This document shows, piece after piece, positions 1,385 through 49,403 of a stretch of DNA of 64,000 nt (position 1 is its first letter; every line of letters begins with the position of its first letter). The notes under the pieces were generated by a model. That model saw nothing but the letters and a program-made list of their open reading frames with translations. It made no database searches and was not told the DNA's origin. Origin of the DNA: Okamejei kenojei (lineage: Eukaryota). A program made the translations under genes and the position numbers. The stretch is taken from assembly GCA_035221665.1 (NCBI GenBank), contig CM069142.1:744001-808000 (forward strand), read 5' to 3'.

Positions 1385-1526
1385 ACGAAGAGTTGTTTCA
1401 CTGAACTACCGTCCAATCTGCGGTCGATCTGACGCACAGCAGCGCAGAAAAACTCGCAGCGGTTGTGAATTCTGCAGAATGACCAGCGGCTCCGTGTGAT
1501 CCGTGTCTCGACACTTCCCTCACAAG
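1385..1526 (+). promoter_or_regulatory. Probable proximal promoter/5' UTR of the IgSF gene
   Basis: Non-repetitive, CpG-containing stretch directly upstream of the ATG, with CCAAT (~1413), a RUNX-like TGCGGT (~1419) and a CRE-like TGACGCA (~1430). Motif matches only. Confidence 0.35.
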
Positions 1527-1575
1527 ATGTCATCGTTTGCAACATTCATCTACACACTCTGCCTCCTTCTCCCAG
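1527..1575 (+). CDS. Exon 1 (leader peptide) of VJ-C1-TM-ITIM Ig-superfamily receptor: MSSFATFIYTLCLLLP(G)
   Basis: AAGATGT start, 16 mostly hydrophobic codons, then a phase-1 donor CAG|GTAAGG. Joins in frame to the exon at 2353, the usual split-leader arrangement of IgSF genes. Confidence 0.85.
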
Positions 1576-2352
1576 GTAAGGCATTCATGTTCACCCTTGC
1601 CAACCTCTGTTCACGTTGTCTTCCGATAACGTGTTTCTTTCTATCCCTTTTGCATTAATGTTTGATGCTTTTTTGCCGTCTTTTTGAAATTTAACGTGTA
1701 ATTTATGTTCAATTTGTTTTTGAATACGTGTTTGTTTCAGTGTAGGTGCATTCGATGCTGTTGCAAGCAAGTTTTTAATTTAGACCCAAAAGCAGAAATT
1801 GAAAATGCAGTTAAAATAAGTTTATGTCAGAAAGTTAACACGACTATGTTTAAGCGAAGGGTTCCGACCCGAAACGTCACCCGTCATTTTTCTCCAGAGA
1901 TGCTGCCTGACCCGCTGAGTTACTCCTGCACCTTGTGTCTATCTTAAATATAAGCGACACAAGGAACTGTAGATGCTGGAATCTTCAACAAAACACAGTG
2001 TTGGAGTAACTCAGCGGGTCAGGCAGCATCTGTGGAGAACATGGACAGGTGACGTTTCACACAATGTTGGAGTGACTCAGCGGGTCAGGCAGCATCTGTG
2101 GAGAACGTGGATAGATGGCGTTTCGCTTCGCGACCTTTCTTCAGATATGTTCTCCAGAGATGCTACTAGCGTCTCCAACACTTTGTGTCTGTCTTCGATA
2201 CAGATCAGCATCTGCAGTTCCTTCCTACACAAGTAGTTACAGGTGAGAGAGGGGTGGTTTATTTGCGCCTGGACCTCACTGTCCTTGTGCCCATGATAGT
2301 AAACTCGAGTTACTCGGAAGACGTCGTTAACTATGTTCACTTTCCGTGCCAG

Positions 2353-2688
2353 GGCCCGCTGTCGGTGTGAGGGTGATCCAGTCTCCTGCTGCTCTGACGC
2401 TTCTCCGAGGGCAGACAGCTACGTTCACCTGCTCCATGCTACCCGGAGAGGGGGAGGAAGTTTCAATGAGGATATTCTGGTTTCGGACGAAAGACAACCC
2501 GGAGCTCTGGGACAACAAGACCGAGAGTTTTCTGAAGACAGGCGACCGACTGTCCGTATCTATGGGCTCGCTGGTCATTCGGGAGGTGACTGTGCACGAT
2601 GCAGACACTTACCATTGTGTGGTACTGATAGGTGAAGCATTCCCCTGGAAAATGTTTATAGGAAATGGAACAACATTACACATCCAAG
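2353..2688 (+). CDS. Exon 2: Ig V-set domain with fused J-like strand (VJ type)
   Basis: Acceptor tttccgtgccag|G, donor CAAG|GTAATT, 336 nt, phase 1-1. Motifs VIQSP, TATFTC, IFWFR, SLVIREV, DADTYHC and J-like FIGNGTTLHI (G-x-G bulge). Confidence 0.95.
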
Positions 2689-5110
2689 GTAATTAATATA
2701 GAACATACAACAGGAACAGGCCCTTCAGCCCACAATGTTCGTGCGGACCATGAGGCCAAATTAAACTAACTTGTATATTCATGTGTCTATCCAAACGTCT
2801 CTTAAACTCTGCGATCGTATCTGCCTCCACAGCCACCCCGAGGATCTGATGCGGTGGGATTGGTGAATCACACGAATCCCAAGTTCTCCAACCCGAAACG
2901 CCGCCTGTCCATTCCCTCCACAGATGCGGCCTTAACCGCTGAGTTCCTCCAGCATTTTGTGTTTTGCTTAAGACTGCATCCCCTGCAGTTCCCTGTCTCT
3001 ACTTCCATTTCATTCCTGCATTTCATCTCTCTCTATTAATGCTCATTTTCCGGCACAAACCAACCCAGTCTGACAAAAGGTCCCGAACCCAAACGCCATC
3101 TATCCCTGATTTCCAGAGACGCTGCCTGACCCGCTGCGTTAACTCCAGCGCTTTGAGTCTATCTTTGGTTTAAAAAAAACTCGCATCAGGTGTTCCTCCG
3201 TCTCCCTAATGATACAAAAATAGATAATGAAAACAACCTCAACCTCGGTCGCAGTGTTTACATCCCCAACAGGTCTAGTGCTGCCATTTAATTATCTTGG
3301 TTTCCTTACACGGAGGGAGTGTGGAAACAAAAGCCTCTTTGTTTCTCCCAGTTTTCTCTAGATTCCCTCTTGACCTGAATGGCTGAAGGATTCTTGTCTT
3401 TGTCAAGTTCGGTTTAACATTTGCTTCCGGGCTCCAGGGAAGTAGAGTAACTGGCCCTGAAACAATTCCCGGCTGCGATAACCAAATGTGCGGCAGATGC
3501 ATCATGTTTACGTGTGAAAATGAACACAACTAAATATAAGCGACAGAATCAATGAGGGCAGCAGTGAGAGAGGGCAGACTCAAAGTGCTGGAGTAACTCA
3601 TCGGGTCAGGCAGCATCTCTGGAGATCATGGATCGGCGACGTCTCGGTACGGGGCCCGACTACAGACTGCGAGAGAGGTTATTACAGAACTGCGTCGGAG
3701 GAGGATAAATTCTTCAAAGAAGGCATACCTTGATGGATTTCACAGTGGAGCAGTCACATGTAGACACTGGTTTATAGCGGGTCAGGCAGCACCTGTGGGG
3801 ATCATGGATAGGTGACGTTTAGGGTCAGGGCCCTTCGCCAGCCTGGGTTGGTTTGTGCCTCAACATGCACCTTAATAAAGAGAGAAAATGCAGGAAGGGA
3901 AAGAAATAGAAGTGGAGACGGGGAACTGCAGGCGCTGGAGTCTTATTTAAACAAAACACAAAGCACTGGGGAACTCGGCGGTTAAGGCAGCATTCGGGTT
4001 GGGAACTTGGGACGCGTGTGAGGTCCCCACCCCACCGCATCAGCGGCCAGTGGGGATGGTCGCACACATTCCTCACGCTTCATTGAAGGTGGGGGGGGGG
4101 GGGGGTTTACCGATTCACATTGAAGGCTTCCAGCCGAAACCCTGACCCTGAGACACAAGGAACCGGAGGTGCTGGTTAAAAAAAAGACGCAAAGTGCTGG
4201 AGTAACTCATCGGGTCAGGCAGCATCTCTGGAGAACGTGGACCGTCAGCCTCTTCCCGCGAATCAGGCCTGTCCGGCTGAATATTTATATGTTCTGTTTT
4301 AGATGTCCATCATCTGCTTTGATTTAGTTTACCGTCTACAAGATATTCACGTCTATTTAATGCATTAAAATACACAAAGTGCTGGAGGAACTCGGCGGGT
4401 CCGGCAGCATCTGTGGAGGGAATGGACACGTGGCGATTCAGGCCGAGGAAGGGTCCCGACCCGAAACGCCGCCTGTCCAATCCCCCCGCAGATTCAGTGT
4501 GATCATGGCTGATCATCCACAACCAGTATCCCGTTCCTACCTTCTCCCCATATCCCTGGACTCCACTATCTATAACTCGCTCTTGAAACCATCGAGAGAA
4601 TTGGCCTCCACTGCCTTCTGAGGCAGCGAACTCCACAGATTCACAACTCTCTGGGTGAAATATTTTTCCTCATCCCCATTCTAAATGGCCTACCCCTTAT
4701 TCTTAAAAAATCCAGCATCTCCAATCTCCAATTCCATTTCATTCGCTTCCTGTATTTTTCTCTCTTATTTGTGCATTTTGAGACACAGACTGAAGAGATG
4801 TAGTCTGTAGAAGTAACCCGACCCGAAACATCACATATCATCCATGAAGAGTTACTCCAGCACTTTGGTGTCTCGTTACCTATCCATGTTCTCCAAGATG
4901 CCGCCTGACCCTCTGAGTTACTCCAGTACTTGTGCCTTTCTTTGATATAAACCAGCATTTGCAGCTCCTCTCATTCCGCTACTAATCCATTGAATTACGT
5001 GGTTTCCCCTTCTGCACGGTGCACGGCGTGCCGTGTTATCACAGTTGCTCCAGGCATGACTGAGAGCGACTGGAAGATTCACAAGCGTGCTATTTTCCTA
5101 CTTTACGCAG

Positions 5111-5409
5111 CGAAGCCTGACATCTCCCTGACCTGGATCCCGGGTAGAAGGCGCAGAGACGCGGAGCCTGACTTGTGTGGCCGCCGGATTCTTCCCGAGG
5201 GAGCTGAACATGTCCTGGGCTGTCGTGGGCCAGTTGTCCTATGAAACAGAAGCGGGGCCGCTGAGGGAGAACGGGGATGGAAGCTTCAACGTGAGCTTCC
5301 CGGTTGCGGCTCACCGACCCTCGGCTAGAGGCGGGCACGGTCGCCACCTGCCTGGTTCAGCACCTCACGGGGACGGGCTCGGTGAGCGAACGCTTCTCTC
5401 CCACCCCAA
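5111..5409 (+). CDS. Exon 3: Ig C1-set domain, with two +1 frameshifts as assembled
   Basis: Acceptor ttttcctactttacgcag|, donor CCAA|GTAAGT. Read across three frames: AKPDISLTWIP / VEGAETRSLTCVAAGFFPRELNMSWAVVGQLSYETEAGPLRENGDGSFNVS / SRLRLTDPRLEAGTVATCLVQHLTGTGSVSERFSPTP. C1 hallmarks CxxxGFxP, W, NxDGxF and CxVxH are present. Length 299 = 297+2. Confidence 0.9.
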
Positions 5410-7914
5410 GTAAGTGGCTTGAATGAACGTGGCAGCCAGCGTCCTCCAATTACTGAAGATACACAGAGTGCTGGAGGAACTCAGCGGCTCAGTTACTGCC
5501 GAGTTACTCCAACATTTTGTGTCGATCTGCGGTGTAAACTAGTATCTGCAGTTCCGTCCTACACATGTCCAAGATTGCAAGGTTTAATAGTACATTTGCA
5601 CAAATTTGTTCAACGTAGCCAGCGGAGTAACTCAGCGGGTCAAGTAGCATCTCTGGAGAACGTTGAACGCAATTCATTTACCTGATCAAAAGTGTATAAG
5701 ATCACTCAATATGTACAATATCTACTGCAAATATGCATTTAGACTTTTAGACTTTAAAGATACGCGGAAAAGGGCATTTCGGCCGATCAGCGATCACCTC
5801 ATACACTGGGTAGACAACAAAATGCTGGAGGATCTCAGCAAGTGAGGCAGCTTCTATGTAGAGAAGGATATGCGACGTTTCGGGTCGAGACCCTTCTTCT
5901 TAAACACATCATACATTAACACTATCCTGCCCATTAGGGACAATTTACAATTTTACCGAAGCCAATTAACCTACAAACCTGTCCGTCTTTGGACTGTGGG
6001 AGGAAACCGGAGCATCCGTAAAGAAAACCCCACGCAGGTCACGGGGAGAACGTACAAACTCCACACATCCAACACCCGTAGTCAGGATTGAACCCGCGTC
6101 TACGGCGCTGTGAGGCAGCTACTCAAGTACAGTTCATCTGTGCATCGATATATATATATACATATATATATATATTTGAGTTGCTGCCTTATATATTATA
6201 TATATGTATGTGTGTATGTATACATCGATGATATCAGCTCATATATACACATCTTTCTTCATTATTATTTGAAACATTTACCGTTATATTATATTATATA
6301 TATCTTGGTCTAATAAAGCACTTACGCCGTGTTTTAACGGTAAATGTTTTCAAATAATAATGAGAGTTGAAGAAAGATGTATAAAATTGATACTCGAGAA
6401 ACTGCAGATGCTGGAATCTTGAGCAACACACAAAGTGCTGGAGGAACTCAGCATCTGTGGAGGGAATGGACATGCGTCGTTTCGGGTCGGGACCCTTCTT
6501 CAGCCCACAGATGCTCCCTGACCCACTGAGTTTCCCCAGCACTTTGTGTTTTGCTCAAGATTCCAGCATCTGCAGTTCCTTGTCCCTCCATAAAACTATA
6601 CAACTGTACTTAATTGATTACCATTTCAATATCGCTCATGGAGCCCCACTGGTTATAGTGCTGCTGCTCAGGAGTATGAAGAATGGGATTAAAGTGAGGG
6701 GGAAAGATTCAATAGGAACCTGAGATGCAACAGTTTTCTGAATTCAGGCTGCCAGAGGAGGTAGTTGAGGCAGGTACTATCACAATGATTAAAAAACATT
6801 TGGACAGGTACATGGATAGGATAGGGGTATCTTGGTCACTGTACGCAAAGGGCCTGTTTCCACATTGTACGATCAATGACTTTTTATGACTCACATGAGA
6901 TGGGATGTTGCTAAATTTGGTGATGACACAGACAGTTGGAAAGTAATGTGGAGACACGGGAATCTCAGATGCTGGAATCCTGCATAAACACAAAGTGCTG
7001 GAGGAACTCAACGGGTCAGGCAGCATCTGTGGAGAAACATGGGATAGGTGATGTTTCGGGTCAGGACCCTTCTTCAGACTGAATATTGTATTATGAAATA
7101 TTGTAATGTATACGACTCCTATGTGATGTTGCTAAATTTTCGAATGATACAAAGACAGATAGGAAAGTTGACTGTGGATAGAATATGTGAACAAGAAAAT
7201 AGATGTGAAGTATAGCATAATGTGGGGAAAAAGTTCAAAATTGTATATTTTGATGAGAAAACAAAAGCTTTTTGCTGTATCTCAGTCCACGTGACCATAA
7301 ACTAACCTAAACTAAAACAAAATAGTTAAAAAAAGTTCTGACACAGGTTGCGACCTGAAAAGTTGAATCTGATTTTCTCTTCACAAATGCCGCCTGATCT
7401 TATGAGCATTTAAGTTTTTTTGAGGGTGGTGTGAGCTGGGGCGTGCTGCCAGGGGTGGTGCGGGAGGTAGATGCCATTTGTGGTGTTAGACGTTACAGGT
7501 TTTGATAGGCACATGGAATTACAGGGAATGGAGGGATATGGATTATTTGCAAACATGGAATTGCTGGGAGTGGAGGGATATGGATATATGCAAACAGAGA
7601 TTAGTTTAACTTGGCATCATGTTCTTCATGGCCATAGTGGGCTGAAGGACCTGTTCCTGTATTGTTATATGTTCTACTTTACAGTAGTTTTCTTGTTTTC
7701 ATTGGTCTATCTTCGGTATAAACCAGCATCTGCATTTCTTTCCTACATTCTCTATCTATCTGTCTGAAAAAGGGTTGCGACCCGAAACGTCACCTACAGT
7801 ATTTCATTTCTTTAGACAAGCTGACTGAACTGCCGAGTTACTACAGCCATTTGTGTCTACCTTCTGATTTTTATTTACTTTTTATTTACTTTTGGAATTA
7901 TTGCCACTTTTCCC

Positions 7915-8665
7915 CCAGGAAAGAATTCCCCTGCAACCGCAAGAGATGCAACACCTGTCCCTATACCTCCTCCCTCGATTCCATCCCGGGATCCCGGTAG
8001 TCCTTTCAGGTTAGGCAGAGGTTCACTTGCATCCCCTCCAACCTCACCTACTGCATCCGTTGTTCGAGGTATGGACTCTTATACATCGTCGAGACCAAAT
8101 GTAGACTGGGCGATCGTTTCGCTGAACACCTTAGCTTAGTCCGCCTGGACCTACCTGATCTCCCAGTTGCTAAACACTTTGATTCTCCTTCCCATTCCCA
8201 CACTGACCTTTCTGTCCTACCTCCTCCATTGTCAAAGTGAGGTTAAATGGAAATTGGAGGAACAACATCTCATATTTCGCTTGGGCAGCTTACAGCCCAT
8301 GGCATGTATATTGATTTCTCTAACTTACAAGTAACCCTTGCATTCCCTCGCTCTCTCTCTCCACCCCCCTCCCCCCCCCCCCCCCCCCCCCCCCCCATCC
8401 AAGTCACAACAGCTTTTTGTTCTCACGTAGCTACAGCTAACAATTACCTGTTTCTTTATCATCAATACTTTTTTTGCATATCTATATCTCTCTACATCAG
8501 TGTCGATATCTCTTGTTTCCCCTTTCCCTTGACTTTCAGTCTGAAGAGGTCTTGACTCAAAACGTCACCTATCCTTCTCTCCAGAGATGCTTCTGTCCCA
8601 CTGAGTTACTTCAGCATTTTGTGTCTATCTTCGGTTTAAACCAGCAACCGCAGTTCCTTCCTATG
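7915..8665 (+). mobile_element. Penelope-like element 3' fragment: GIY-YIG endonuclease remnant plus pLTR
   Basis: Translates to CNRKRCNTCP...FTC.PSNLTYCIRCSRYGLLYIVETKCRLGDRFAEHL (GIY-YIG with CCHH region). Followed by a terminal repeat with a degenerate CTGAAGA...AAACGTC core. Confidence 0.85.
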
Positions 8666-8837
8666 AAATTCTGCTCATCTCTCTATCGTCTAATTTGCTC
8701 CCTGTTCTCACGATCGGTCATTGACCTGTTTCTTTAACTTTCTCTTTCCACATTTGCTGCCTGACCTGCTGCATATTTCCAGCATTTTATTTCTTTTCTT
8801 TATTTAGGTTAAGGGGGTTAAGAAGGTTATTTAGGTT

Positions 8838-9247
8838 AAGAAGGTTAAGGGGGGACTTGATTGAGGTCTTTAAAATGTTGAAAGGGATAGACAGAGTTGA
8901 CGTGGATAAGTTTTTCCCATTGAGGGTAGGGAAGATTCAAACAAGAGGGCATGACATGAGAATTAAGGGACAGAAGTTTAGGGGTAACGTGAGGGGGAAC
9001 TTCTTTACTCAGAGGGTGGTGGCTGTGTGGAATGAGCTTCCAGCAGAAGTGGTGGAGGCAGGATCGATTTTAACATTTAAAAGTAAAGTGGATAGGTATA
9101 TGGACGTGAAGGGAATGGAGGGGTATGGTCTGAGTGCAGGTAGATGGGACAAGGGGAAAACCAAATGGTCGGCACGGACTGGAAGGGCCGAGAGGGCCTG
9201 TTTCCGTGCTGTAATTGTTATATGGTTATATGGTTATATGGTTATAT
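8838..9247 (+). mobile_element. Young CR1 LINE 3' fragment, in intron 3
   Basis: Nearly identical to 53908-54307; ends in a (TATATGGT)n tail. Confidence 0.92.
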
Positions 9248-10186
9248 ATTTTTTTAAAGCTTCTTATTGTAGATTGGTTACTTTACTTACTAACCAATGT
9301 AGTGCTTTATTATTATATGGCAGAAGGCAGCGTTTATCGTCAGTGACTTGGGAGATCTTGGTTTCATCGTAAATGATTTGCTGAAGTCAGTAAGCAGATA
9401 CAGCAAATCAACGTGAAAGCTAGATAGTGGAAATGTCAAGGACTAGAGGACATAGCTTCAAGGTGAGAGAGGCAAAGTTTAAAGGAGATGTACGGGACAA
9501 GTTGTTTTAAACAGAGGGTGGTGAGTACATGGATCATGCTGCTAGTAGTGGCGGTGCAGGCTGATATGATAGTGGCATTTAAGAGGGCGTTCAGATAGGC
9601 ATATGGATGTGCAGGAATGGAGGGATATGATTCACGTGTAGGCAGAGAAGATTGGTTTGACTTGGCTCCATGTTGGTCCTCAGACATTTGCAGGCTGAAG
9701 GGCCTGCACTATGTTCTATGCTTTATGAGGTTGGCAGATTCCGTGCACACAACACGTTCCAAGACAGACCACTATATTAAGGATTCACTGTTGATTTTGC
9801 ATAATGATTTTTCCTTGTTCTTTGTTTATAAGGGGCAAAGTTTAACAAAGATGTGCAGGGTGAGTTTTTGTACACAGAGGGTGGTGGGTGCCAGGAACAC
9901 GCTGCCAGGGGTGGTAGTGGAGGCAGATATGATAGTGGACATGTTTAAGAGGCTTTTTTTGGAAGCAGTTTTACAGTTTGATTTTCCAATAAACCCAAGC
10001 GGTTTGTGAAATGTTTCACTTCTCATAAACAGCTCGGTAATTTTACAACACTTATCGAGTCCACACCCAGATTAGAAGTTGTTTCAGCCAGAGCCAGACA
10101 ATGATGTCATCTTGTGCTTGTTGTGCTTCTTGTGTGTGCTGGTGGAAGAGACTGGTGGAAACAGGGCCGCGACCCCATCCCCCGAT

Positions 10187-12035
10187 TCACCCCCCCTCCC
10201 CCAGGCCACGGGGGCAGACCCAACCGGGGCGCTGGCAGCCATAGTAAATCGCTTTTAAAACATGAGGGGGGGGGACGGACACACACAAATTCCCATGGCG
10301 GCGCCGGCAAGTGTGCATGACAACGGGCCGATGACAAGTGCATTTTTTGACAAAAAAAAAACGAACAATTTTTAACAACCCAAAATCTCTACCAATATAA
10401 ACACACAACACAAAACACAAAAAAAAAAAAAAAAAACAACAACAAACAACAAACAACAACCAACACCTAAACACCCCCCCCCCCCCCTTCGACAATAAGC
10501 ACGTTTTAATTATTTAAACACAGTAATACCATCTGGTTGCCGGTGTAACGCACGCACGCCACACGCCGGGTTGACTGTAATCGTCGAAACAGGGCGGACC
10601 ATGTGAAGGTTGCAATCTTCCACCCCATGCGTAATGCACGAAACACCAGATAATCTGTATTTTTTCAGTTTATTTGCAGTTAATTTGTTTTTTTGAACTT
10701 TGCGCATTTAACAGCGCCATTTTAGCAGCGGTGTCGAGTACATCGTACTTTTTCCCCCCCGCAGGCGATACATTACTCTCAAATCACATACCTTACCTCT
10801 ATTACCGCTCTACATAAAAACAAAGTGTCAATGCCTCTTCAAGGTCTACTAATCCACCCCATAGCTTCAGTTGCAGGTACAGCTGAAGGGATTTGGCGCT
10901 CGGAACGATGACCACATTAGAAGATCATCTGAGCATCTTGAAATCAACCTCATGAGTACGAGTGAAAGATAGCCGAGCAAGGCGGTATCGATCAGCCCAC
11001 ATCGCACAGATGGAAAAGAATGAAATGGAAATTGCAAATTATTCAACTGCAACTTTCACCCCCATGAGATGAACACTTCCGTGCTTATGAGATTGATTTC
11101 AAGATGCTCAGATGATCTTCTAATGCGGTCATTTATGTAGAGGGGTAATAGAGGTAACGTATGTGATTTGAGAGTAATGCATCGTCTGCGGGGGGAAAAA
11201 TGTACAATTTACTCACACCACTGTGAAAATGCGCAAAGTTCAAAAAAATAAATGAACTGCAAATAAACTGAAAATAATCTGGTGTTTCGTGCGTGGGAGC
11301 TTGTTGTGTGCGTTATGCAGGCAACCAGACGGTTTTACTGAGTTTAAACAATAAATAAAATGTGCTTCTTGTTGTCGGGGGGGGAGGGGTAGTGGGAGGA
11401 GATCAAATTGTTAGGTGTGGGTGTCGCGGGGTGAATCACCTTGGTGTGGGGGTCGGGGTACGGTGGCGGTGCATTGCGGTCAGTGACTCTGGGCGGGCAG
11501 AAGGACCAGACTGTCCCCAACTCTGCTGCAGCTGACGGGCCGGGGACGTTGCCGGGTTTTCGTCCCCGTGTGTGCGCGGCCCCACTCCACCCGGCCCCGT
11601 GTGTGTGTGCGCTGCCGACCCACAGCCTGTCACAGTGCGGCCGCACGGGGGAGACGAGGGCGGCCATGGCCGGACAGTGCTGACCCTGTGGGGGGGGGGG
11701 GAAGAGTGGGGGCTGTCCCGAGGGATGCGCTCCTTCGGCCGCTTATACCTTGGTGCTCGGATTCCGAGCACCCAGTCTCCCCTAGGTCCGGGTGGTCTTG
11801 TGTGAGGAAAATGACCCCCACCCTCCTGTCTCCCCCAGCCAGTGATGTGATGGACGCGGGGGTCTGGACCAATCGCTGACAAGTGCCGCCCATTATTTGG
11901 CTTTTCGGCGTTGCGTCCGTTCAGTGAGTTGGCTTTTCCGCGTTGCACCCTCTCAGTGAGTTGGCTTTTAGGTGCCCCGACCTTTCGGTTATTTGGCTTT
12001 TCGGCGTTGCGCCTGTTGGATTATTTGGCTTTTCA
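10187..12035. repeat. Head-to-head inverted pair of an unclassified repeat family
   Basis: 10187-11063 is the reverse complement of the element at 49820-50078 + 54314-54720. 11081-12035 is a forward copy ending in tandem TTGGCTTTTCGG-type units. Confidence 0.8.
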
Positions 12036-12593
12036 GTGTCATTTCCGTTTGATTATATGGCTTCCACTTGTTCGCTTTGGCTTCTCGTCCTTCGATGCCC
12101 ACACACAGCTGTATCTATATTAACAGACGTATTGGTGATATTTACCATGGAATTCCTGCAGAAAGAATCCTATTGACATATTTCACAAGAGAAATATCTC
12201 GGAAATATTAGATTTTAATATATTTCTGTTTCAATCGTCTGTGCGGAGATTGCCTGTTTTAGCTGTGACCACGTGGGTTTCCTCCGGGTGGTCTGGTTTG
12301 TAATTCGATTGATCCCTGCACGTTGCTTCTAGTGTGTAGAGAGAGTGGATGTGAAAGTGGGACAATATAGAATTGGTGTGAGCGGGTGATCGATGGGCAG
12401 CGATGGACTCGGTGGGCAGATGCACCAGGTTCTATTCTGTTTCTCTAAACAGAATGAAACTAAACTAAATACATGTTTAATGATGCATTTACTGAAATGA
12501 TGATTATATTAACGTAACATGCATTAGTCATGATTATATTTGTAATTCATTGGAGCATAGCTTTGATTTCACATTTCAATTGTTATTTTCAAG

Positions 12594-12695
12594 GATTCCT
12601 TAAGTATTATTTCATCCTACTGAGTCTGATCCTAATAGTACCAATATGCGTCTGGATCGTGTATAATTATCACAGTAAATTGAAGAAAGAAAAAG
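12594..12695 (+). CDS. Exon 4: transmembrane segment FLKYYFILLSLILIVPICVWIVYNYHSKLKKEK
   Basis: Acceptor ttattttcaag|, donor AAAG|GTAATG, 102 nt, phase 1-1. About 20 uncharged hydrophobic residues followed by a basic stop-transfer cluster. Confidence 0.85.
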
Positions 12696-12904
12696 GTAAT
12701 GTATACATTCTTCATTTTAATTTTGTAATTTTAACTAAAAACTGAGCATTTAAAGTGAATATTGTCTTTTCTTGGTTCTTGGTTCTTGGTTCTTGGTTCT
12801 TGGTTACTTGGTCCTCCAAAATATTCCAACTGGAATTTAAACTGGAGGTGGTGAAGGGAATGTCTTTAGTTCCCAGAGAGATTTACATAATTTAAACACA
12901 ATTA

Positions 12905-13205
12905 GGGCAACACAGTGTTGAAGCTTGTAGAGCTGCTGCCTCACAGCGGGTTCAATCCTGACTGGGTGCTGACTGTGTGGAGTTTGCACGTTCTCCCTGT
13001 GACTGCGTGGGTTTCTTCAGAGTGCTCCAGTTTCCTCTCACATCCCAAAGATGTTTTGGGTTTGTAGGTTAATTTGGCCCTCTGTAAATTGCCCTAAGTG
13101 TGTAGGGAGTGGCCGAGAAAGTGGGATAACATAGAACTAGTATGATCGATGGTCAGCATAGACTCGTTGGGCTGAAGGGCCTGTTTCTGTCCTGTATCTG
13201 AAGTA
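12905..13205 (+). mobile_element. HE1-type tRNA-derived SINE
   Basis: tRNA-like head (GGGTTCAATCC B-box), conserved body TGTGGAGTTTGCACGTTCTCCC and CR1-like 3' end GGGCTGAAGGGCCTGTTTC. Related copies at about 5900-6130(-), 12235-12460, 13433-13700, 14300-14590(-), 22288-22570, 24899-25130, 26740-27025(-), 27480-27720(-), 27895-28190, 30045-30345(-), 37515-37770(-), 56462-56715, 58920-59105, 61040-61266(-) and 61830-62430. Confidence 0.8.
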
Positions 13206-13232
13206 CACTAAATATTCATGATATTTTTATAG

Positions 13233-13300
13233 ATTCATCTGTCCATGACACAACTGTTGATATTCAAAGAATGAGAAAACGAAAGAACTCAGTAAATGAG
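13233..13300 (+). CDS. Exon 5: cytoplasmic linker DSSVHDTTVDIQRMRKRKNSVNE
   Basis: Acceptor atatttttatag|, donor GAG|GTGAGT, 68 nt, phase 1-0. Open, and bridges the phases of exons 4 and 6. Confidence 0.8.
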
Positions 13301-16039
13301 GTGAGTAATTTAGTTTGATATTTACCCTTATGTTGCGTGCACGATGCTCTAATGTACACTGAGGTATTGTCAGCTTATATGAACTGATTCATCAGCACTA
13401 TTGGATGTAATGGACTAATAACACAAGCCATTTGGCAGCAAGGTGGCGCAGCGGTAGAGTTGCTGCCTTACAGCACCAGAGACCCGGGTTTGATCCTGAC
13501 TACGGGTGCTGTCTGTACGGAGTTTGTAAGTTTTCCCTGTGACCTCGTCGGTTTTCACCGGGTTCTGGCTACTCATTCTCCAAAGGCGTACAGGTTAATT
13601 AGCTTCTGTAAAAATTATCGCTAGTGTGCAGGATAGTGCTAGTGCAGGGGTTAATCGCTGGTCGGCGCAGACTCGGTGAGCCGAAGGACCTGTTTCTCTA
13701 ATATATCTGCAGTTCCTTGTGTCAGCAAACCCAAATGGTCACTCTACTTTACCGATCGAGAGAATTTTTCAATGCATTTAACTTGTTTGCCCTGTTTGCT
13801 TCCATCAGCTGGAATTAAACTGCCAACAAAGTGAGATCCATATTCCAAAGCACACTTCCTCTTCAAGGAAGCCTTGTGATCAACTGCATACCAGCCATTT
13901 GACATTGCTCGTGTAATGAGTTTCGTTGTTAATAACCAGTTGAAGAAGTGATGCTGCTACTAATTTGCATTGGATTTCATTCTTTTCAACTAAATCTCCT
14001 ATGCGTAAAATGACCTCAAGTGCCTGGTTTACACAAAATAGTGACTGCAGGGTCATTTACCCAGGATAGGGAAATCTGGCTGTTTTATTAAAACATTTTG
14101 TCTTTTTTTCCAAGCCACCATCTGCAGTTCCTTGCGTATTTATTAAAGAAGTACAGTTCTGTTACTTTTTTTATTCTTCTACTCTGTGAACTTGGAGTAT
14201 AATCCAGGGTCTCATTGCCCTCAATGTTATTTCTCACTTCTTCAAGTGTATATCCTACCGTTGATGAAATGACATATCTTGACCAAGTCTGGTTAGACTT
14301 TCAAGATACATTCAAGAAACAGGCCTCTTGGCCCTCCGAGTCCGCTCCGACCAGCAATCACCTCTTACACTAGCGCTAACCTACACACTAGGGACATTTT
14401 ACAAATTTACCAAAGCTAATTAACCTACAAACCTGTACATCTTTGGAGTGTGGGAGGAAACTGGAGCATCTGGAGATCCCGCGCGATCAAGTGGAGAACA
14501 TATAAACTTTGTACAGACAGCACATGTAGTCGGGATTAAACCTGGGTCTCTGGCGCTGTGAGGCAGCAACTCTACCGCTGCGCCAATGTGCCCCCCTATC
14601 ATGCACCTTTTTGCACATGACATTAGTTGCACTCCGCAGACTCACGTTCACCTCTGTATCATTTTACACACACAAATCCTGATAGCGCGAGACAAACAAA
14701 ATAGCTGTTAATCTTGTCCTTTTAGAGTTGGTCAGACACCAGGTCACATTGTCAGATTATAGCAGGCACAGATATTCCCTACACACTGGGGGCAATTTAC
14801 AGAAGGCCAATTAATCTACAAACCCGCACGTCTTTGGGACATGGGAGGAAATTAGAGCATGGATGAATGAATTAATTCTGCCCGGTATCTTTCCCTGGAT
14901 TCCTCGTACTGAATGTGCAGCAGCTGAAAGTGATGGGGGTGGGTTTTCTCCTTAAACAGCTCAGTGAGTGGTCGGATGAGTTTTAGCAGTTGGATGTCAC
15001 TTCAGTAATATGTGAATTGCCAGCGTAAAGTTTTCTGATTCTAGCAATATTCCACCGTCATATCACACTGTCCCCTACCAACAACAATCCCATCAGAACC
15101 ACCCTAACTGAGGTCATCTGTTGCTGGCCCTGATTTGGCCCGATCTTTTCTTACTTCCATTTCCACATCCCTACTCCTCCCCCCCCCTCCTCCCCCCTTC
15201 CTCAGTCTGAAGAAGGGTCCCATCCCAAAACGTCACTTATTCACCACACAGACATGAGACTCATTGACTTTCTCCAGCACTTCGTGTCTATCAATGAGAT
15301 TAAATCGTGGCCAGGGTGGGTCTCTGATGATATTGGTTCACTTTTTGAGGCAGTGCCTCCTGCAGATTACTCCGATGTTGGGGAGGTCTGTTCCTGTGAT
15401 GGACTAGGCAGTGTCCACCTTTCTTTGTAACCTGCTTCATTCCTGGGAGATGTTGGCAGTGATATCAGTGAAACAGAAATTGCCCACAAGTGTCACATGC
15501 CCATCGATCACTGACTAGTCCATGGACACACACATCCACACTTTAGCTTTTGCCCATTTGGTGTTTACTAATCAAATTCTTTATTGATTTTCACATGACT
15601 TTTCAACATAGAGCATTTATACCTCATTAGATTCAGCTAAAAATAAAATGACCATAAGATCATCAGACATAGTAGCAGAATTAGGTCATTCAGCCCATCG
15701 AGTCTGCTCCGACATTCACTCATGGCTGATCTAATTTTCCCTCTCAACCAATTCTCCTGCCTTCTCCCCGTAATCTTTGACACCCGTACTAATGAAGAAT
15801 CTATCATTCCCCGCTTTAAAATTATCCAATGTCTTGGCCTCTACCACTGTCTGCGCTAATGAATTCCACAGATTCACCACCATCTGGCTAAATAAAATCC
15901 TCTCATCTTCATTCTATTGTTTTCCTCAATTTTCTAAAGTTCTAAAACTCTCCTCTTTGCCAATTCTAACATGAAGAATAAAATGTTTATAACAATAAGG
16001 TGAATGTATGCAGAGAAGATTTAATTGTTTTTTTTTTTT

Positions 16040-16248
16040 ACAATTACAGCACGGAAACAGGCCCTCTCGGCCCTTCCAGTCCGTGCCGACCATTTGTTTT
16101 CCCCTAGTCCCATCTACCTGCACTCAGACCATACCCCTCCATTCCCTTCACGTCCATATACCTATCCACTTTACTCTTAAATGTTAAAATCAATCCTGCC
16201 TCCACCACTTCTGCTGGAAGCTCATTCCACACAGCCACCACCCTCTGA
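16040..16248 (-). mobile_element. Young CR1 LINE 3' fragment, in intron 5
   Basis: Reverse complement of the CR1 3' end seen at about 54080-54285. Confidence 0.9.
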
Positions 16249-16579
16249 GGGTGGTGGCTGTGTGGAATTTATGATTATGAATTTACAATTATGTTGCCAG
16301 GACCTGAGGGCCTGAGCTGTTGGGAGAGGTTGGATAGGCTAAGACACTATTCCTGAAGCACAGGAGCATGTGGCGATATTATAGATGTATAGAAAATCAT
16401 GATGGGAATAGGTGAGTCTTTTACCCAGAAAAGGGAATTGGGAAATAGAAGGCATATATTTAATGTGAGAGGGAAAAACCTGCGGGGCAACTTTATCACT
16501 CAGAGGGTGGTGGGTATATGGAACAAGCCACCAGAGGAGGTAGTTGAGGCAGGGACTATAGCACCATTTAAAAGATATT

Positions 16580-16800
16580 TGGACAGGTACATGGACATGT
16601 GCATGGACAGTTGCATGGACAGGTGCATGGACAGTTGCATGGACAGGTGCATGGACAAGTGCATGGACAAGTGCGTGGACACATACATGGACAATACATG
16701 GACAGGTACATGGACAGGTACATGGACAACTGCATGAACAGGTGCATGGACAGGTACATGGATGGGTGCATGGACAAGTGCATGGACAGGCGCATGGATA
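16580..16800 (+). repeat. 12-bp minisatellite (CATGGACAGGTG/A)n inside an old CR1 3' fragment (16290-16920)
   Basis: About 18 tandem variant units, each containing ATGGAC or a near variant. Confidence 0.9.
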
Positions 16801-16987
16801 GGAAAGGTTTGCAGGGACGAGAGCCAAACACGGGCAAATGGGACAAGCTTAGATGGGGCATCTTAGTCAGTGTGGACAAGTTGGGCCGATGGGTCTGTTT
16901 CCATACTGTATAATTCTATGATATGAACTCTATAACACTAATATTTACCAGTGAGTCTTATTGTTACTTATTATTTTTGTGTTACAG

Positions 16988-17134
16988 GATAATGTTTCAA
17001 TAAACAAAGAAAATCTGCATTATGCGCCTGTTTATTTCAACAAGGGACAGCAAAGACAGGAATTGAGATGGACCGAGCAATCCCAAGAAACAGAATATGC
17101 CATCTTAAAGGTCAAAGATAAAAGTAATTTATGA
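16988..17134 (+). CDS. Exon 6 (terminal coding): DNVSINKENLHYAPVYFNKGQQRQELRWTEQSQETEYAILKVKDKSNL*, with ITIM and ITSM-like motif
   Basis: Acceptor ttatttttgtgttacag|, phase 0. LHYAPV at 17015-17032 fits [ILVS]xYxx[LV]; TEYAIL at 17090-17107. TGA at 17132-17134. Confidence 0.88.
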   Translation, partial: DNVSINKENLHYAPVYFNKGQQRQELRWTEQSQETEYAILKVKDKSNL

Positions 17135-17457
17135 AGAACCCATAACCCAGAGTAATAATTTGTCCGTCTTCAATGAGACCACAAACTGATAATTATCATA
17201 AAACCACACACTCTTCTCACAAACAATATACGTAGAATATAAGAAACAGAAACTAGAGGCCATAGCATGGCTTCTGAAACTTACTTCTCTATTCAATTAC
17301 TTTCCTTGAGCTCAAACCCAATTTATCTTAGTGACTGGGCATTGATCGCCTTCTGAGAGTTCCAAAAGTTTAGCTTTATTATTGTCATGTGTAGCGAGGT
17401 ACAGTGAAAAGCTTTGTTTTGCATGTTATCCAATCAAATCAGATACTATTATACATA

Positions 17458-19696
17458 CAGTGGCTTGCAAAAGTATTCATACCCCTTGAACTTTTCCACA
17501 TTTTGTCACGTTACAACCACAAATGTAAATGTATTTTCTTAGGATTGTATGTGATAGACCCCAACACAAAGTGGCGCATAATTGTGAAGTGGAAGAAAAA
17601 TGATACACGGTTTTCAAATCTTTTTACAAATAAAAAACTGAAAAGTGTGGCGTGCAAAAGTATTCAGCCCCCTTTACTCTGATACCCCTAAATAAAATCC
17701 AGTGCAACCAATTGCCTTCAGAAGTCATTAATTAGTAAATAGTGTCCACTTGTGTGTAATCTAATCTCAGTATAAATACAGCTGTTCTGTGAAGGCCTCA
17801 GAGGTTTGTTAGAGAACATTAGTGAACAAACAATGTTCCTTGGGCATCATGAAGCCCAAGGAACACACCAGACAGGTCAGGGATGAAGTTGTGGAGAGGT
17901 TTAAAGCAGGGTTAGGTTATAAAAAAATATCCCAAGCTTTGAACATTTCACGGAGCACTGTTCAATCCATCATCCGAAAATGGAAAGAGTATGGCACAAC
18001 TGCAAACCTACCAAGACATGGCCGTCCACCTAAACTGACAGGCCGGGCAAGGAGAGCATTGATCAGAGAAGCAGCCAAGAGGCCCATGGTAACTCTGGAG
18101 GAGCTGCAGAGATCCACAGTTCAGGTGGGAGATTCTGTCCACAGGACAACTATTAGTCGTGCACTCCACAAATCGGGTCTTTATGGAAGAGTGGCAAGAA
18201 GAAAGCCATTGTTGAAACAAAGCCATAAGAAGTCACATTTGCAGTTTACCACAAGCCATGTGGGGGACATAACAAACATGTGGAGAAGGTGCTCTGGTCT
18301 GATGAGACCAAAATTGAAGTTTTTGGCATAAATGCAAAACGCTATGTGTGGTGGAAAACTAACACTGCACATCACCCTGAACACACCATCCCCACTGTGA
18401 AACATGATGGTGGCAGCATCATGCTGTGGGATGCTTTTCTTCAGCAGGGACAGGGAAGCTGGTCAGAGTTGATGGGAAGATGGATGGAGCCAAATACAGG
18501 GCAATCTTGGAAGAAAACCTGTTAGAGTCTGCAAAAGACTTGAGACTGGGGTGGAGGTTCACCTTCCAGCAGGATAACAACCCTAAACATACAGCCAGAG
18601 CTACAATGGAATGGTTTAGATCAAAGCATATTCATGTGTTAGAATGGCCCAGTCAAAGTCCAGACCTAAATCCAATTGAGAATCTCTGGCAAGACTTGAC
18701 AATTGCTGTTCACAGACGCTCTCCATCAAATCCGACTGAGCTTGAGCTATTTTGCAAAGAAGAATGGGCAAAAATTTCAGTCTCTAAATGTGCAAAGCTG
18801 GTAGAGACATACCCCCATTGTTGAAACAAAGCCATAGGAAGTCACGTTTGCAGTTTGCCACAAGCCATGTGGGGGACATAACAAACATGTGGAGGAAGGT
18901 GCTCTGGTCTGATGAGACCAAAATTGAAGTTTTTGGCATAAATGCAAAACGCTATGTGTGGTGGAAAACTAACACTGCACATCACCCTGAACACACCATC
19001 CCCACTGTGAAACATGATGGTGGCAGCATCATGCTGTGGGGATGCTTTTCTTCAGCAGGGACAGGGAAGCTGGTCAGAGTTGATGGGAAGATGGATGGAG
19101 CCAAATACAGGGCAATCTTGGAAGAAAACCTGTTAGAGTCTGCAAAAGACTTGAGACTGGGGTGGAGGTTCACCTTCCAGCAGGATAACAACCCTAAACA
19201 TACAGCCAGAGCTACAATGGAATGGTTTAGATCAAAGCATATTCATGTGTTAGAATGGCCCAGTCAAAGTCCAGACCTAAATCCAATTGAGAATCTCTGG
19301 CAAGACTTGACAATTGCTGTTCACAGTCGCTCTCCATCAAATCCGACTGAGCTTGAGCTATTTTGCAAAGAAGAATGGGCAAAAATTTCAGTCTCTAAAT
19401 GTGCAAAGCTGGTAGAGACATACCCCCAAAAGACTTGCAGCTGTAATTGCAACGAAAGGTGGTTCTACAAAGTATTGACTCAGGGGGGCTGAATACTTTT
19501 GCACGCCACACTTTTCAGTTTTTTATTTGTAATAAAATTTGGAAACCATGTATCATATTCCTTCCACTTCACAATTATGCACCACTTTGTGTTGGTCTAT
19601 CACATAAAATCCCAATAAAATACATTTACGTTTGTGGTTGTAACGTGACAAAATGTGGAAAAGTTCAAAGGGTATGAATACTTTTGCAAGCCACTG
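17458..19696 (+). mobile_element. Tc1-family (DD34E) DNA transposon with long IR/DR terminal repeats and TA target duplication
   Basis: TA|CAGTGGCTTGCAAAAGTATTCA...TGAATACTTTTGCAAGCCACTG|TA. TIRs of ~215 bp carry an inner repeat GCAAAAGTATTCA. Transposase remnants lie inside. Confidence 0.97.
17849..19478 (+). pseudogene. Tc1 transposase, frameshifted, with duplicated catalytic domain
   Basis: Paired-like HTH with GRP, then [14 protein letters not shown] and SPDLNPIE (34 residues between D and E). The C-terminus ...GGSTKY* follows a +1 slip. Confidence 0.92.
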
Positions 19697-30611: not shown

Positions 30612-31303
30612 GGGGAAGCCAAATAACCGAACGGAAATGACACTTGTCAGCGATTGGTCCAGACCCCCGCGTCCATTACATCACTGGCCGGGGGAGGGGC
30701 GGGTGGGGGTCATTTTCCCACACAAGACCGCCCGGGGCTGGAGGGTGACTGGGCGCTCTGAACCCGAGCACCAAGTTGTAAGCGGCCGAAGGAGCGCATC
30801 CCTCGGGACAGCCCACACTCTGCCCCCCCCAGGGTCAGCGCTGTCTGGCCACTGCCGCCCTCCACCTCATGTCCCCCTGTGACGGTCTGTGGGTCGGCAG
30901 CGCACACACACACACACACACACATGGGGCCGGGTGGAGCAGAGTTGGGGACAATCTGGTTCCTCTGCCCACCCAGAGCCACCGGACCCTGACCCCCACA
31001 CCAGGGTGATTCACCCTCCCGACCCCCACACCCCGACCCACACACGGGGTGAATCACCCCCCGACACCCACACCAAGTGATTAACCCCCGGCCGTGGGGA
31101 TAGACGGCCTGCGTCGCATTAGAAGATCAGCTGAGCATTTTGAAATTAATCCCATGAGCACAAGTGATAGATAGCTGAGCGAGGCGGTATCGATCAGCCC
31201 ACATCGCACAGAGTGGAAAAGAATGAAATGGAAATTGCAAATTATTCAACTGCAACTTTCCCCCTTCCCCGACACAAAGGCAGCAATAACATATTTGCCA
31301 CAT
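30612..31303 (-). repeat. Internally deleted copy of the unclassified repeat family seen at 10187-12035 and 49770-55238
   Basis: Reverse-complement similarity to 11420-11900 and 49775-49965. Confidence 0.8.
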
Positions 31304-38520: not shown

Positions 38521-39781
38521 GTAAAATTGGTGTGAGGCCAGCTATATATCTAAGTGGAAAGAGATTGAGACATATAACCCTGTCTTCCACATCCAAACAC
38601 TTTTGGGAGAAAAAGCACTTCCTGGACATATCAGCAGTATAATCGATCCAATAACGATATTTACTTTAGAAACCTGGTTCACTCTTACCAGACAACTTAA
38701 ACTGAATAAACGACAAAAGGTTTTAAGATGGATAGCTTTGGATAATGAATTTAAACCAGGGATGTATGACTCAACATTTAAAGAGTGAATGAAGAAAGGA
38801 ATGACTGCATCTTGTACTGTTACTGAAAATGGAGACCTAAGAAGTTTTCAAGATTTGAAGGATAGATTTGCACTTCGGAACCAAGACTTGTTTAGATACT
38901 TCCAACTGAGAGATTATTACAACAAAAAGGTAAAAAGGGAGGAACTAGAAGAAAAGAATCCAGTGATAGAAGTGATAGTTATTGCGTATCATCAAAACAC
39001 ATTAAGGATTATTTCTAAACTGTATCATAGTTTAATGGAATGTCAAGCTGAAACTACATTTTATGTAAAATGTAAGTGGGAAAAGGAATTGAACATTACA
39101 ATCTCAGAAGAAGAATGGCAGCATATGTGTGTAACACTACAGACATCCACTAATTTACAAAATTGGAGAGAATTTAATTGGAAACATTTGATTTGTTTCT
39201 TTATTACGCCTAACATAAAAAGCAAGCAAATTCTAAGGCAGCAGACATGCTGGAGGCAATGTGGTCAAACAGACACAAATCATGCACATATCTTCTGGAG
39301 TTGCCCAAAAATAAAACCATTTTCGGACAGAGTGAATTCAGAATTAACGGAGGTATTAGGATATATAGTCTCCAAGAAGTGTTCCATTTTATACCTGGTG
39401 CTGAAAGAAGATCATTACTTGGTTAAAATCCTAATCACTGCTGGCAGAAAGGCCATTACAAGAAACTGGCTTGCAGCGGACACACCATGACTTAGACAAT
39501 GGTTAGACATAGTACATTAAATATTTGCCATGGAGAAAATGACATATTCTCTAAGAGTGAAAGAAGACGAGTTTAACAGAAAATGGGAAAAATGGATTAG
39601 GTATAGAAATAAAGACGACTTCCGGTAGCGCTATGGAGGGCTAGAGGATAACGCCAGCCAGCTCCTCATAAAAAATGGGAAAAAAATCGGGGATTAACGG
39701 ACCTGCCTGCTGCCTGCTGCCTGCTGCCTGCCGTCTCTGCACCGATTGCTGTGAGTGACGTCATCAGGCGCGCAACTTGTT

Positions 39782-40795
39782 ATGGCTACCCACCCGAAAA
39801 ATCGAAAAGTCAAACTACCAGGCTGAGACCGGGGGAAGGCCTGACTGAAGCCTCGGACTCAGGTAGGACATTATCCCAAGAAGATGTGATGAAAAAAACG
39901 ACAAAAAAGATCGGAAAGTGAAGAACTTAAAACTTTTATTGCACGTGAAATTGCTGGTTTAAAGGAGGAAATAAACCAGATGAATGCTGAAATGAAAGAA
40001 TTGAAACGTGAAATTAATACCAATATTAATACTAAGACTAAGAAAATATCAGATGAATTGAAAAAATAAATTGCAGAAATGATGATTGAAATGTCAAAGG
40101 AGACGAATGATAAGATTAAAAATGTGAAAACTGATTTTGAAGAAAGGCTGAATCCTGTGGAGAAGGCACTGGACCAACAGACGGCTGGCATAAAAAGCCT
40201 TGAAGAACTAGCTGAAACAAGTGCTCAGACTGCAGCAAAGCTTATCACAGAAAATGGATGTCTAACGGATTTATTGACCAAAATAACCGAGAAATGTACT
40301 GAACTAGAAGGTCGCCAGAGAAGACAAAACCTAAGAATTGCAGGTATTCCTGAAAGGGAAGAGGAAGATAAAGATCTCCGAGAATTTACTGCGAATTTAC
40401 TGCAACATGTTTTATCTCTGGAACAAAAGCCTTTGCTAGCCCGAGCACACAGAGTGATGAGACGTCAGACAAGACCAAATGCTCCCCCAAGACAAATGAT
40501 AATAAAAGTACAATACGACTACGTCTTGGAGGAGATAATGCAAAAAACATCGAGAAACAGAAACCTTACATTTGAAGGACACAAGATCAGCATCTATCGA
40601 GATTATCCAGCAGAAGTCGTCAGGAAACGAAAAGTGTTTAATGAGACTAAAAGTCTCCTGAGGGGGGTGGAAAACTTGAAATATGGCCTGATTTACCCAG
40701 CTACTCTAAGAGTCACTTTCAACAAGAAGGAATATTTCTTCTCCAACCCTGTGGAAGCGCTGGACTTTGCCGGGAAGATTAAGATTAAGACTTGA
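39782..40795 (+). pseudogene. L1 ORF1p (coiled coil + RRM + CTD), disrupted toward the N-terminus
   Basis: Motifs LEGRQRRQNLRIAGIPE, RAHR, PRQMI, IYRDY and YPATLRV. Confidence 0.88.
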
Positions 40796-40933
40796 GAAGG
40801 CCTCATCATTGAATACACTGACTTTGCAGGACTTTACAGGACTGGATGGAATTCGTCTATTCCGTGTTCGGCTGTAAGGTCGGGTCTGTCGAACTGAACC
40901 ATTGGCTCTATTACAGACCTCCATAGACAAAAG

Positions 40934-43900: not shown

Positions 43901-44697
43901 TTTATGGATTACATTCAAATGATTATTTTAGATACTTACAAATTAGAGACTATGTAAAAGCAAAAACACAGGAAATTAGAAATAGAAAGACAGAAATTTT
44001 AGATGAATGTCTAAATAAACATCCGAACACAGAAAAATTGATATCATACATTTATAATATCCTATTGGAAAATGATGTCCCATTGACAGAAATATATAGA
44101 CAATCGTGGGAAAACGAATTAGGTCAAATTATTAGACCAGAAGTATGGGATGAAAGTTTACAACACATACACCACTGTTCGTTAAATGCTAGACACTCTC
44201 TTATACAATTTAAAATATTACATAGACTACATTACTCAAAATCCAAACTACATAACATTTTTTCAAATGTATCTGCCATATGTGATAAATGTCAGCACTT
44301 AGAAGCTAACTTGACACACTCATTTACAAATTGTGTAAAAATTACAAAATTTTGGATAGAAATATTTAGGATAATTTTGAATGTTATTAATATGAATCTG
44401 ACTCCTGACTCAAAGTTAATAATACTGGGAATACTGGAAACAGATCAATTAATAACAATGAATCAAATAATTTTTATTGATTATAGTTTAATAATTGGGA
44501 AAAAATTAATATTAAAATTCTGGAAAGGTCCCACATCCCCCACAATCAAAATGTGGATTACAGGAATGTCGGAGACACTCCATCTGGAAAGATTGAGGCT
44601 CGTCCTAATGGACAGGTTGGATCTTTTCAGAGGAATATGGTCTCCAGTCATTGAATATCTAAAGGGTCAAAATGGCTCGGTGCGAGAGCCTGGCTGA
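40934..44697 (+). pseudogene. L1 ORF2p (APE endonuclease, RT, C-terminal Cys domain), with several stops/frameshifts
   Basis: Motifs SWNVKG, IQETH, GGDLN, SRIDY, SDHAP, PGPDG, GCRQGCPLS, LYADD and CDKC...HSFTNC. Confidence 0.93.
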
Positions 44698-49255: not shown

Positions 49256-49403
49256 NNNNNNNNNNNNNNNNNNNNNNNNNNNNNNNNNNNNNNNNNNNNN
49301 NNNNNNNNNNNNNNNNNNNNNNNNNNNNNNNNNNNNNNNNNNNNNNNNNNNNNNNNNNNNNNNNNNNNNNNNNNNNNNNNNNNNNNNNNNNNNNNNNNNN
49401 NNN
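49256..49403. other. Assembly gap (others at 60172-60606 and 62740-63707)
   Basis: N runs. Confidence 1.

Follow-up and report, generated by a model that had tools for sequence, protein, structure and literature searches.

A 64,000-nucleotide (nt) stretch of the Okamejei kenojei genome (GenBank assembly GCA_035221665.1, contig CM069142.1, positions 744,001 to 808,000 of the forward strand), hereafter the window, carries a six-exon gene for a membrane receptor that combines a V-set and a C1-set domain with a tyrosine-bearing cytoplasmic tail. Reading of the sequence and exon-by-exon translation place an AG acceptor and a GT donor at every boundary, with phases of 1, 1, 1, 1 and 0, just as the original prediction, made from the letters alone, had proposed. 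The parts that it had listed (leader, V domain with fused J strand, C1 domain, uncharged membrane span, and the motifs LHYAPV and TEYAIL) were recovered in the translations and by Pfam. The exons and a remnant behind them are the following, where ITIM and ITSM stand for immunoreceptor tyrosine-based inhibitory and switch motif:

1527..1575, plus strand: exon 1, start codon and most of a split leader, MSSFATFIYTLCLLLP; ends in phase 1, GT donor at 1576
2353..2688, plus strand: exon 2, remaining leader residues and V-set domain with fused J-like G strand; 336 nt, phase 1 to 1
5111..5409, plus strand: exon 3, C1-set domain; 299 nt as assembled, 300 nt in frame once corrected
12594..12695, plus strand: exon 4 (102 nt, phase 1 to 1), uncharged membrane span YYFILLSLILIVPICVWIVYNY between a short stalk and a basic stop-transfer stretch
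13233..13300, plus strand: exon 5, cytoplasmic spacer; 68 nt, phase 1 to 0
16988..17134, plus strand: exon 6, cytoplasmic tail with the ITIM LHYAPV and the ITSM-like TEYAIL; stop codon at 17132-17134
17130..17232, plus strand: relic of a distal tail, past the stop and in two other frames (YEEP..., then VIICPSSMRPQTDNYHKTTHSSHKQ), with an internal stop and its tyrosines lost

With exon 3 corrected as described below, the coding sequence comprises 1002 nt, i.e. 333 amino acids plus a stop. Split leaders are typical of antigen-receptor genes, and exon 1 has a tblastn match with the leader of a homologue from Mobula. In the same type of search, exons 4 and 5 correspond to residues 222-259 and 260-284 of a homologue, respectively, exon 6 is 56-62% identical to homologue tails, and 17 family proteins are colinear with all six exons of the window. 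This colinearity of full-length homologues supports the joined six-exon model. Neither a second C1 exon (two-C1 homologues as tblastn queries, E up to 1) nor an exon for an activating membrane span (tblastn, E up to 1, introns and downstream sequence) was found within the window.

Exon 2 is recognised by Pfam as a V-set domain (E 1.2e-9) and shows the hallmarks of this fold: the Cys in FTC, the Trp in IFWF and the stretch DADTYHC. It ends in FIGNGTTLHIQ, where GNGT forms the GxGT bulge of the G strand, and V domain and J-like strand are therefore encoded in one exon. No CACAGTG heptamer adjoins the V exon; the nearest copies, at 1994 and 3741, are both intronic, and the whole window holds 15 against a chance expectation of 8.5. 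The absence of a recombination signal around this exon, noted in the original prediction, is thus borne out at the exon borders, and a rearranging T-cell receptor (TCR) or immunoglobulin (Ig) gene can be rejected, since V and J-like strand share one exon without a bordering heptamer.

C1-set domains are distinguished by an (F/Y)(F/Y/H)P motif, 13 residues between Cys and Trp, and xVxH after the Cys of the F strand (PMC2785349, Hatherley et al. 2009). Corrected exon 3 has all three: FFP at the start of the BC loop, C-VAAGFFPRELNMS-W with 13 residues, and C-LVQH. Pfam assigns the 52-residue middle piece of the exon to the C1-set (E 1.3e-6), and the C-terminal piece alone had no match among solved structures.

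Frameshifts in exon 3

The 299 nt of exon 3 as assembled are spread over three reading frames. Taken at face value, this would mark a pseudogene with genuine frameshifts in its C1 exon, and the truncated tail, with decayed remnants past its stop, could be read in the same way. Contigs of four public runs were mapped on positions 1400-5600 of the window at 88% likeness. Two of them, X1 and X5, are samples of the source species from two studies, X6 derives from a closely related sister species, and the small run X20 has a guessed RNA label, no run being recorded as RNA. X1, X5 and X6 all have an additional C after 5131, an additional G after 5141 and one base fewer at 5297. The differences at 5131 and 5141 are carried by the full depth in all three DNA runs, and that at 5297 by the full depth in X1, by 56.7 of 91.2 in X5 and by 76.6 of 95.5 in X6; it is present in X20 too. 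Because the three DNA runs share the same three differences, the true exon 3 must be 300 nt long and in frame. Its translation aligns with the orthologue from Pristis over 96 residues without a gap (67% identity), the C1 domain starting with KPDISLTLDPGVEGAE in the window gene and with KPDVSLTLDPEVEAAG in Pristis. The need for a repair had been recognised before, but the correction proposed at that time, which removed two bases (999 nt, 332 amino acids, reading KPDISLTWIP...), was wrong in detail: a frame was regained, though not the correct one where the domain begins, and the contigs call for three single-base changes.

The wider comparison tells the same story. Over 4.2 kb, the window has six private single-base insertions or deletions (indels) relative to all three DNA runs (at 2842, 3197, 3216, 5131, 5141 and 5297) against about eight to ten private substitutions, a ratio that indicates an error pattern and not divergence. 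In exon 3, the errors fall on short base runs (cc, ggg, tt), and further private single-base indels of the window, located in its introns, are placed alike; beyond its indels the exon differs from the runs at one position at most, synonymously. The frameshifts are assembly errors, and a pseudogene is scarcely credible when an in-frame version occurs in contigs of two samples of the same species, of a sister species and of a probable RNA run; on the mapped contigs we rejected it. Since the assembly appears to be prone to single-base indel errors where bases are repeated in short runs, frameshifts in its other genes should be compared with reads before a pseudogene is called.

X20 also provides a faint hint of expression. 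A 163-nt contig of this run on 5246-5409 ends exactly at the donor of exon 3 and carries the in-frame letter at 5297, and depth is zero on unique stretches of the introns. Transcription of the gene and use of the exon 3 donor are thereby weakly supported.

A family in cartilaginous fishes and amphibians

Cluster look-ups and two word-based searches revealed family members in at least 14 chondrichthyan species, including batoids (Pristis, Hypanus, two species of Mobula, Hemitrygon and Narcine), sharks (Scyliorhinus, Mustelus, Stegostoma, Hemiscyllium, Heterodontus and Heptranchias) and chimaeras (Callorhinchus and one unlabelled chimaera-like sequence); protein searches returned no member from a skate. 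The RefSeq orthologues of Pristis pectinata (XP_051870356), Scyliorhinus canicula (XP_038658211) and Hypanus sabinus (XP_059824346) have the same exon order as the window gene and conserved tail motifs. In the V and C1 domains, identity to the window gene amounts to 63-67% in Pristis and to 47-58% in other rays, sharks and chimaera. The V exon is 63% identical to the Pristis orthologue; an exhaustive HMMER search with this exon gave one match at 65%, from Pristis pectinata, and three at 49-51%. When C1 domains were compared in a maximum-likelihood tree, the window gene fell within a batoid clade (support 99/99). The predicted structure of the closest full-length homologue was poor, with a mean predicted local distance difference test score (pLDDT) of 44.5 from an 11-row alignment.

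Outside Chondrichthyes, only two matches of the V exon were followed by a family-like C1 domain, a caecilian protein (named SIRP-alpha-like in RefSeq, after the signal-regulatory proteins, SIRPs) and a frog protein. The shark and caecilian proteins align from leader to C-terminus with 26% identity over 369 residues and four tyrosine motifs in register, and the alignment of the frog protein extends through TEYA. The architecture is therefore at least as old as the common ancestor of jawed vertebrates. A homologue search with the caecilian protein returned this protein alone. Judged from alignments and tree, the window gene is the batoid orthologue of a family that spans the chondrichthyans and has full-length homologues in amphibians. 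The original prediction had been unable to assign an orthologue; this no longer holds given at least 14 chondrichthyan species and amphibian homologues, and the architecture is not a lone discovery, the family being already present among public predicted proteins. The window gene is a new, probably unannotated member of this publicly predicted but uncharacterised family of SIRP-like V-C1 paired receptors. A literature search found no paper on SIRP-like genes in sharks, and the RefSeq names of family members are inconsistent: ‘signal-regulatory protein beta-1-like’, ‘tyrosine-protein phosphatase non-receptor type substrate 1-like’, ‘immunoglobulin kappa light chain-like’, ‘T cell receptor beta chain-like’, ‘Ig heavy chain Mem5-like’ or ‘uncharacterized’. 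Treating the members as one family would tidy these names.

Some batoid relatives (P0084 of Pristis, P0094 of Mobula and P0095 of Hemitrygon) join a nearly identical ectodomain to a membrane span with an Arg and to a short tail, and the C1 domains of the inhibitory and activating forms of Pristis are identical. Because of these relatives, the family reads as a paired system of inhibitory and activating receptors comparable to SIRP-alpha and SIRP-beta. The inhibitory forms of the Myliobatiform genera Hypanus and Mobula possess two nearly identical C1 domains, i.e. a recent exon duplication. As a separate observation, RefSeq isoforms of Heterodontus and Heptranchias (P0090 and P0091) skip the 102-nt exon of the membrane span in frame, which would connect C1 directly with the tail; these might be soluble forms.

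Among the V-exon differences listed between window and runs, 14 variants fall on 13 positions in the range 2436-2666. Ten of these 14 are non-synonymous (eight positions), with three positions in residues 28-40 and four in residues 92-100, the parts that resemble the first and third complementarity-determining regions (CDR1 and CDR3). In addition, an in-frame six-base indel of two codons at 2636-2644 is carried by part of the depth in X1 and X5 and by all of it in X6. The C1 exon has a single, synonymous difference. Such a pattern would fit a stem that is conserved and a ligand-binding tip that varies; the differences may represent alleles or a near-identical paralogue, and the pattern is put forward as a lead. 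The V domain of SIRP-alpha is variable as well.

Tail motifs and possible kinship with SIRPs and antigen receptors

The tail is highly conserved in the family alignment, and its tyrosine motifs, four in number, read LHYASV, TEYAVL, VxYSTV and TTYASL. Of these, only the first two remain in the window gene, as LHYAPV and TEYAIL, whose tyrosines lie 25 residues apart and are followed by the stop, making this tail the shortest of the family. The C-termini of homologues match 17152-17232, within the relic behind the stop, which carries no tyrosine motif even if read through; in Pristis, the third tyrosine has been lost as well. An ITIM and an ITSM about 25 residues apart are also the layout found in PD-1 and, for SIRP-alpha, in the first half of the tail. 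With the distal half of the tail gone and two of four ancestral motifs left, the second of them of the ITSM type (Thr at -2), the receptor could instead act as a switch, through an adaptor-dependent ITSM as in SLAM, or as a decoy. We regard such a non-inhibitory role as very unlikely in view of the spacing shared with PD-1 and SIRP-alpha and of the two motifs themselves, which are invariant or nearly so in the family alignment.

In the mode of action that we infer (ligand contact, phosphatase docking, inhibition and the type of cell concerned), the V domain would bind a ligand on a cell surface or a pathogen via its CDR1-like and CDR3-like loops, which seem to vary between individuals. Src-family kinases would phosphorylate both tail tyrosines, tandem SH2 domains of the SHP-1/SHP-2 type would dock on the ITIM/ITSM pair, and the docked phosphatases would damp the activation of the receptor-bearing cell. 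The Arg-bearing activating twins would rely on an acidic adaptor for signalling. The NK or myeloid checkpoint role suggested in the original prediction is putative.

Taken together, the locus is a real, intact gene for a 333-residue type I membrane receptor, and the likely reading is that of an inhibitory member of a SIRP-like family of paired receptors. Several points weigh against this reading or parts of it. The mapping spanned exons 1-3 only, with contigs in all runs, and no read-based joins lead from exon 3 to exons 4-6. In an assembly with indel errors, the stop at 17132 is provisional, and the tail might be longer. X20 has a guessed RNA label and no depth on the V exon. Paralogues mapped at 88% likeness could account for part of the V-exon ‘polymorphism’, and one X1 contig contains 10 gapped letters somewhere within 2214-2611. 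Finally, the kinship with tetrapod SIRPs rests on weak similarity, architecture and a language-model score: identity to a lizard SIRP-like protein is 26-30% and confined to the C1 domains, the V exon is nearer to antigen-receptor V domains than to SIRP V, and the C1 piece, scored against single domains, is equally close to IgG CH3 and SIRP d3.

Among named families, SIRP comes closest both in the word-based search (SIRP-like protein of Podarcis, E 1.6e-16) and in a language-model search (score 0.96); the caecilian protein, too, is among the nearest named matches outside Chondrichthyes. The structures of SIRP-alpha and SIRP-gamma give a contiguous V-C1 match to the family profile. The label ‘SIRP-like’, already used in the original prediction, is shared by the language-model search and, for most members, by automatic annotation. 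Like SIRPs, the window gene has an N-terminal V-set domain whose single exon includes a J-like G strand, a membrane-proximal C1-set domain with FFP, 13-residue Cys-Trp spacing and xVxH, an uncharged membrane span, ITIM-like tail tyrosines of the YA type and an apparently variable V domain; activating partners with a basic residue in the membrane span occur here in batoid relatives only. Unlike the V-C1-C1 ectodomain of tetrapod SIRPs, it has one C1 domain, and two tyrosine motifs against four in SIRP-alpha and in the shark, chimaera and caecilian homologues. One could go further and regard the family as true orthologues of tetrapod SIRP-alpha, a one-C1 proto-SIRP to which a second C1 was added later by exon duplication. 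The same order of parts, the four YA-type motifs, the paired activating forms and the proximity to SIRP among named families would agree with this, and the duplication in Myliobatiform rays demonstrates that a second C1 arises easily. We nevertheless consider such orthology somewhat unlikely: the low similarity to the lizard protein does not extend beyond C1, no SIRP V domain is among the best 60 solved-structure matches of the V exon, and the C1 tree groups amphibian with chondrichthyan sequences apart from the lizard SIRP-like protein, albeit on long branches and with a separating branch below the support threshold. The gene is SIRP-like in architecture and probably in its mode of action.

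The solved-structure matches of the V exon are not specific, the best being the light-chain V domain (VL), the V domain of the new antigen receptor (VNAR) and TCR V-alpha. The best whole-chain match of the C1 piece is UrIg2 (E 6e-10). UrIg and UrIg2 were reported by Flajnik et al. in 2023 and 2025 (PDB 9dmx). Together with the split leader, the J-like G strand and the Ig kappa-like or TCR-beta-like names of some RefSeq members, these matches might suggest a relic of the antigen-receptor lineage nearer to TCR, Ig or UrIg than to SIRP, a non-rearranging chain that gained its inhibitory tail later. This appears distinctly unlikely. Several domains, at 8-16 bits each, add up to the UrIg2 score, generic V and C1 similarity cannot resolve lineage, and the window gene has neither an interchain Cys nor a charged residue in its membrane span. 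The secreted UrIg comprises three C domains and UrIg2 as many as 9-11; both are devoid of an ITIM tail and are located in the major histocompatibility complex (MHC) or beside the Ig/TCR cluster. The window gene is similar to these elasmobranch genes in its non-rearranging single-exon VJ, split leader and subsequent C1-type domain, but differs by its one C1 domain and ITIM tail; identity with UrIg or UrIg2 was rejected, because those genes possess at least three C domains and lack an ITIM (PMC12227049).

With TCR and Ig light chains, the window gene shares the V(J)-C1 order, the split leader and similarity of the V domain, yet its V and J lie in one exon without a recombination signal, it lacks the interchain Cys and the charged span residues for CD3-type partners, and it has inhibitory motifs of its own. 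The description as ‘TCR-chain-shaped’ in the original prediction was therefore loose, given the missing membrane-proximal Cys and span charge, while its core proposal, a non-rearranging membrane receptor with single-exon V(J), C1 and ITIM/ITSM-like motifs, is supported. The very short stalk without a Cys argues against a disulfide-linked, TCR-like dimer. PD-1 and PRARP, the chicken VJ-type ITIM receptors, resemble the window gene in their J-like V domain and in the ITIM and ITSM-type motifs of the tail; neither is known to possess a C1-set domain.

At present, the origin of antibodies and T-cell receptors is approached through non-rearranging VJ-C1 genes such as UrIg and UrIg2. To these the family adds a membrane-bound, one-C1 form with a built-in inhibitory tail and activating twins, spread from chimaeras to amphibians. 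It would offer a candidate for the ancestry of the SIRP checkpoint receptors and, among the oldest jawed vertebrates, a paired-receptor system amenable to study. Hatherley et al. (2009, PMC2785349) postulated that SIRPs and antigen-receptor chains share a root in a membrane-bound receptor with a single VJ-C1 unit. It is conceivable, though on balance unlikely, that the family is the closest living form of this root, retained from chimaeras to amphibians with a four-tyrosine tail, V loops under diversifying selection and gene-converted activating partners. If so, it would represent a germline-encoded, polymorphic system for sensing self and non-self or pathogens that predates or parallels RAG-based diversity.

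Surrounding sequence

Between 17 and 64 kb, the window contains no other host genes; its open reading frames there belong to Tc1/mariner elements and long interspersed nuclear elements (LINEs):

17400-19500: Tc1/mariner element with helix-turn-helix (HTH) domains of the Sleeping Beauty type and DDE_3
38789-44697: LINE-type retrotransposon, AT-rich, with endonuclease and reverse transcriptase
45486-48013, minus strand: LINE-type retrotransposon
50255-54222: LINE-type retrotransposon whose first reading frame encodes a GDSL esterase, ahead of endonuclease and reverse transcriptase

The third LINE is presumably of the CR1/L2 type, judging from the GDSL match in Pfam. Part of the Tc1/mariner transposase is present twice, at 18426-18824 and 18788-19492, and the element is therefore rearranged or nested. 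Intron 3 of the receptor gene harbours a foldback-like repeat (10636-11292) with nested inverted arms of 48-83 nt that are 90-96% complementary; related copies, 72-96% identical, are found near 30641-31264, 48643-50078 and 54308-55204. A G-rich, low-complexity region at 59006-59970 has long open frames on both strands, Gly/Trp-rich on one and Pro-rich on the other, and is probably a degenerate repeat rather than a gene. Runs of N occupy 49256-49403 (148 letters), 60172-60606 (435) and 62740-63706 (967).

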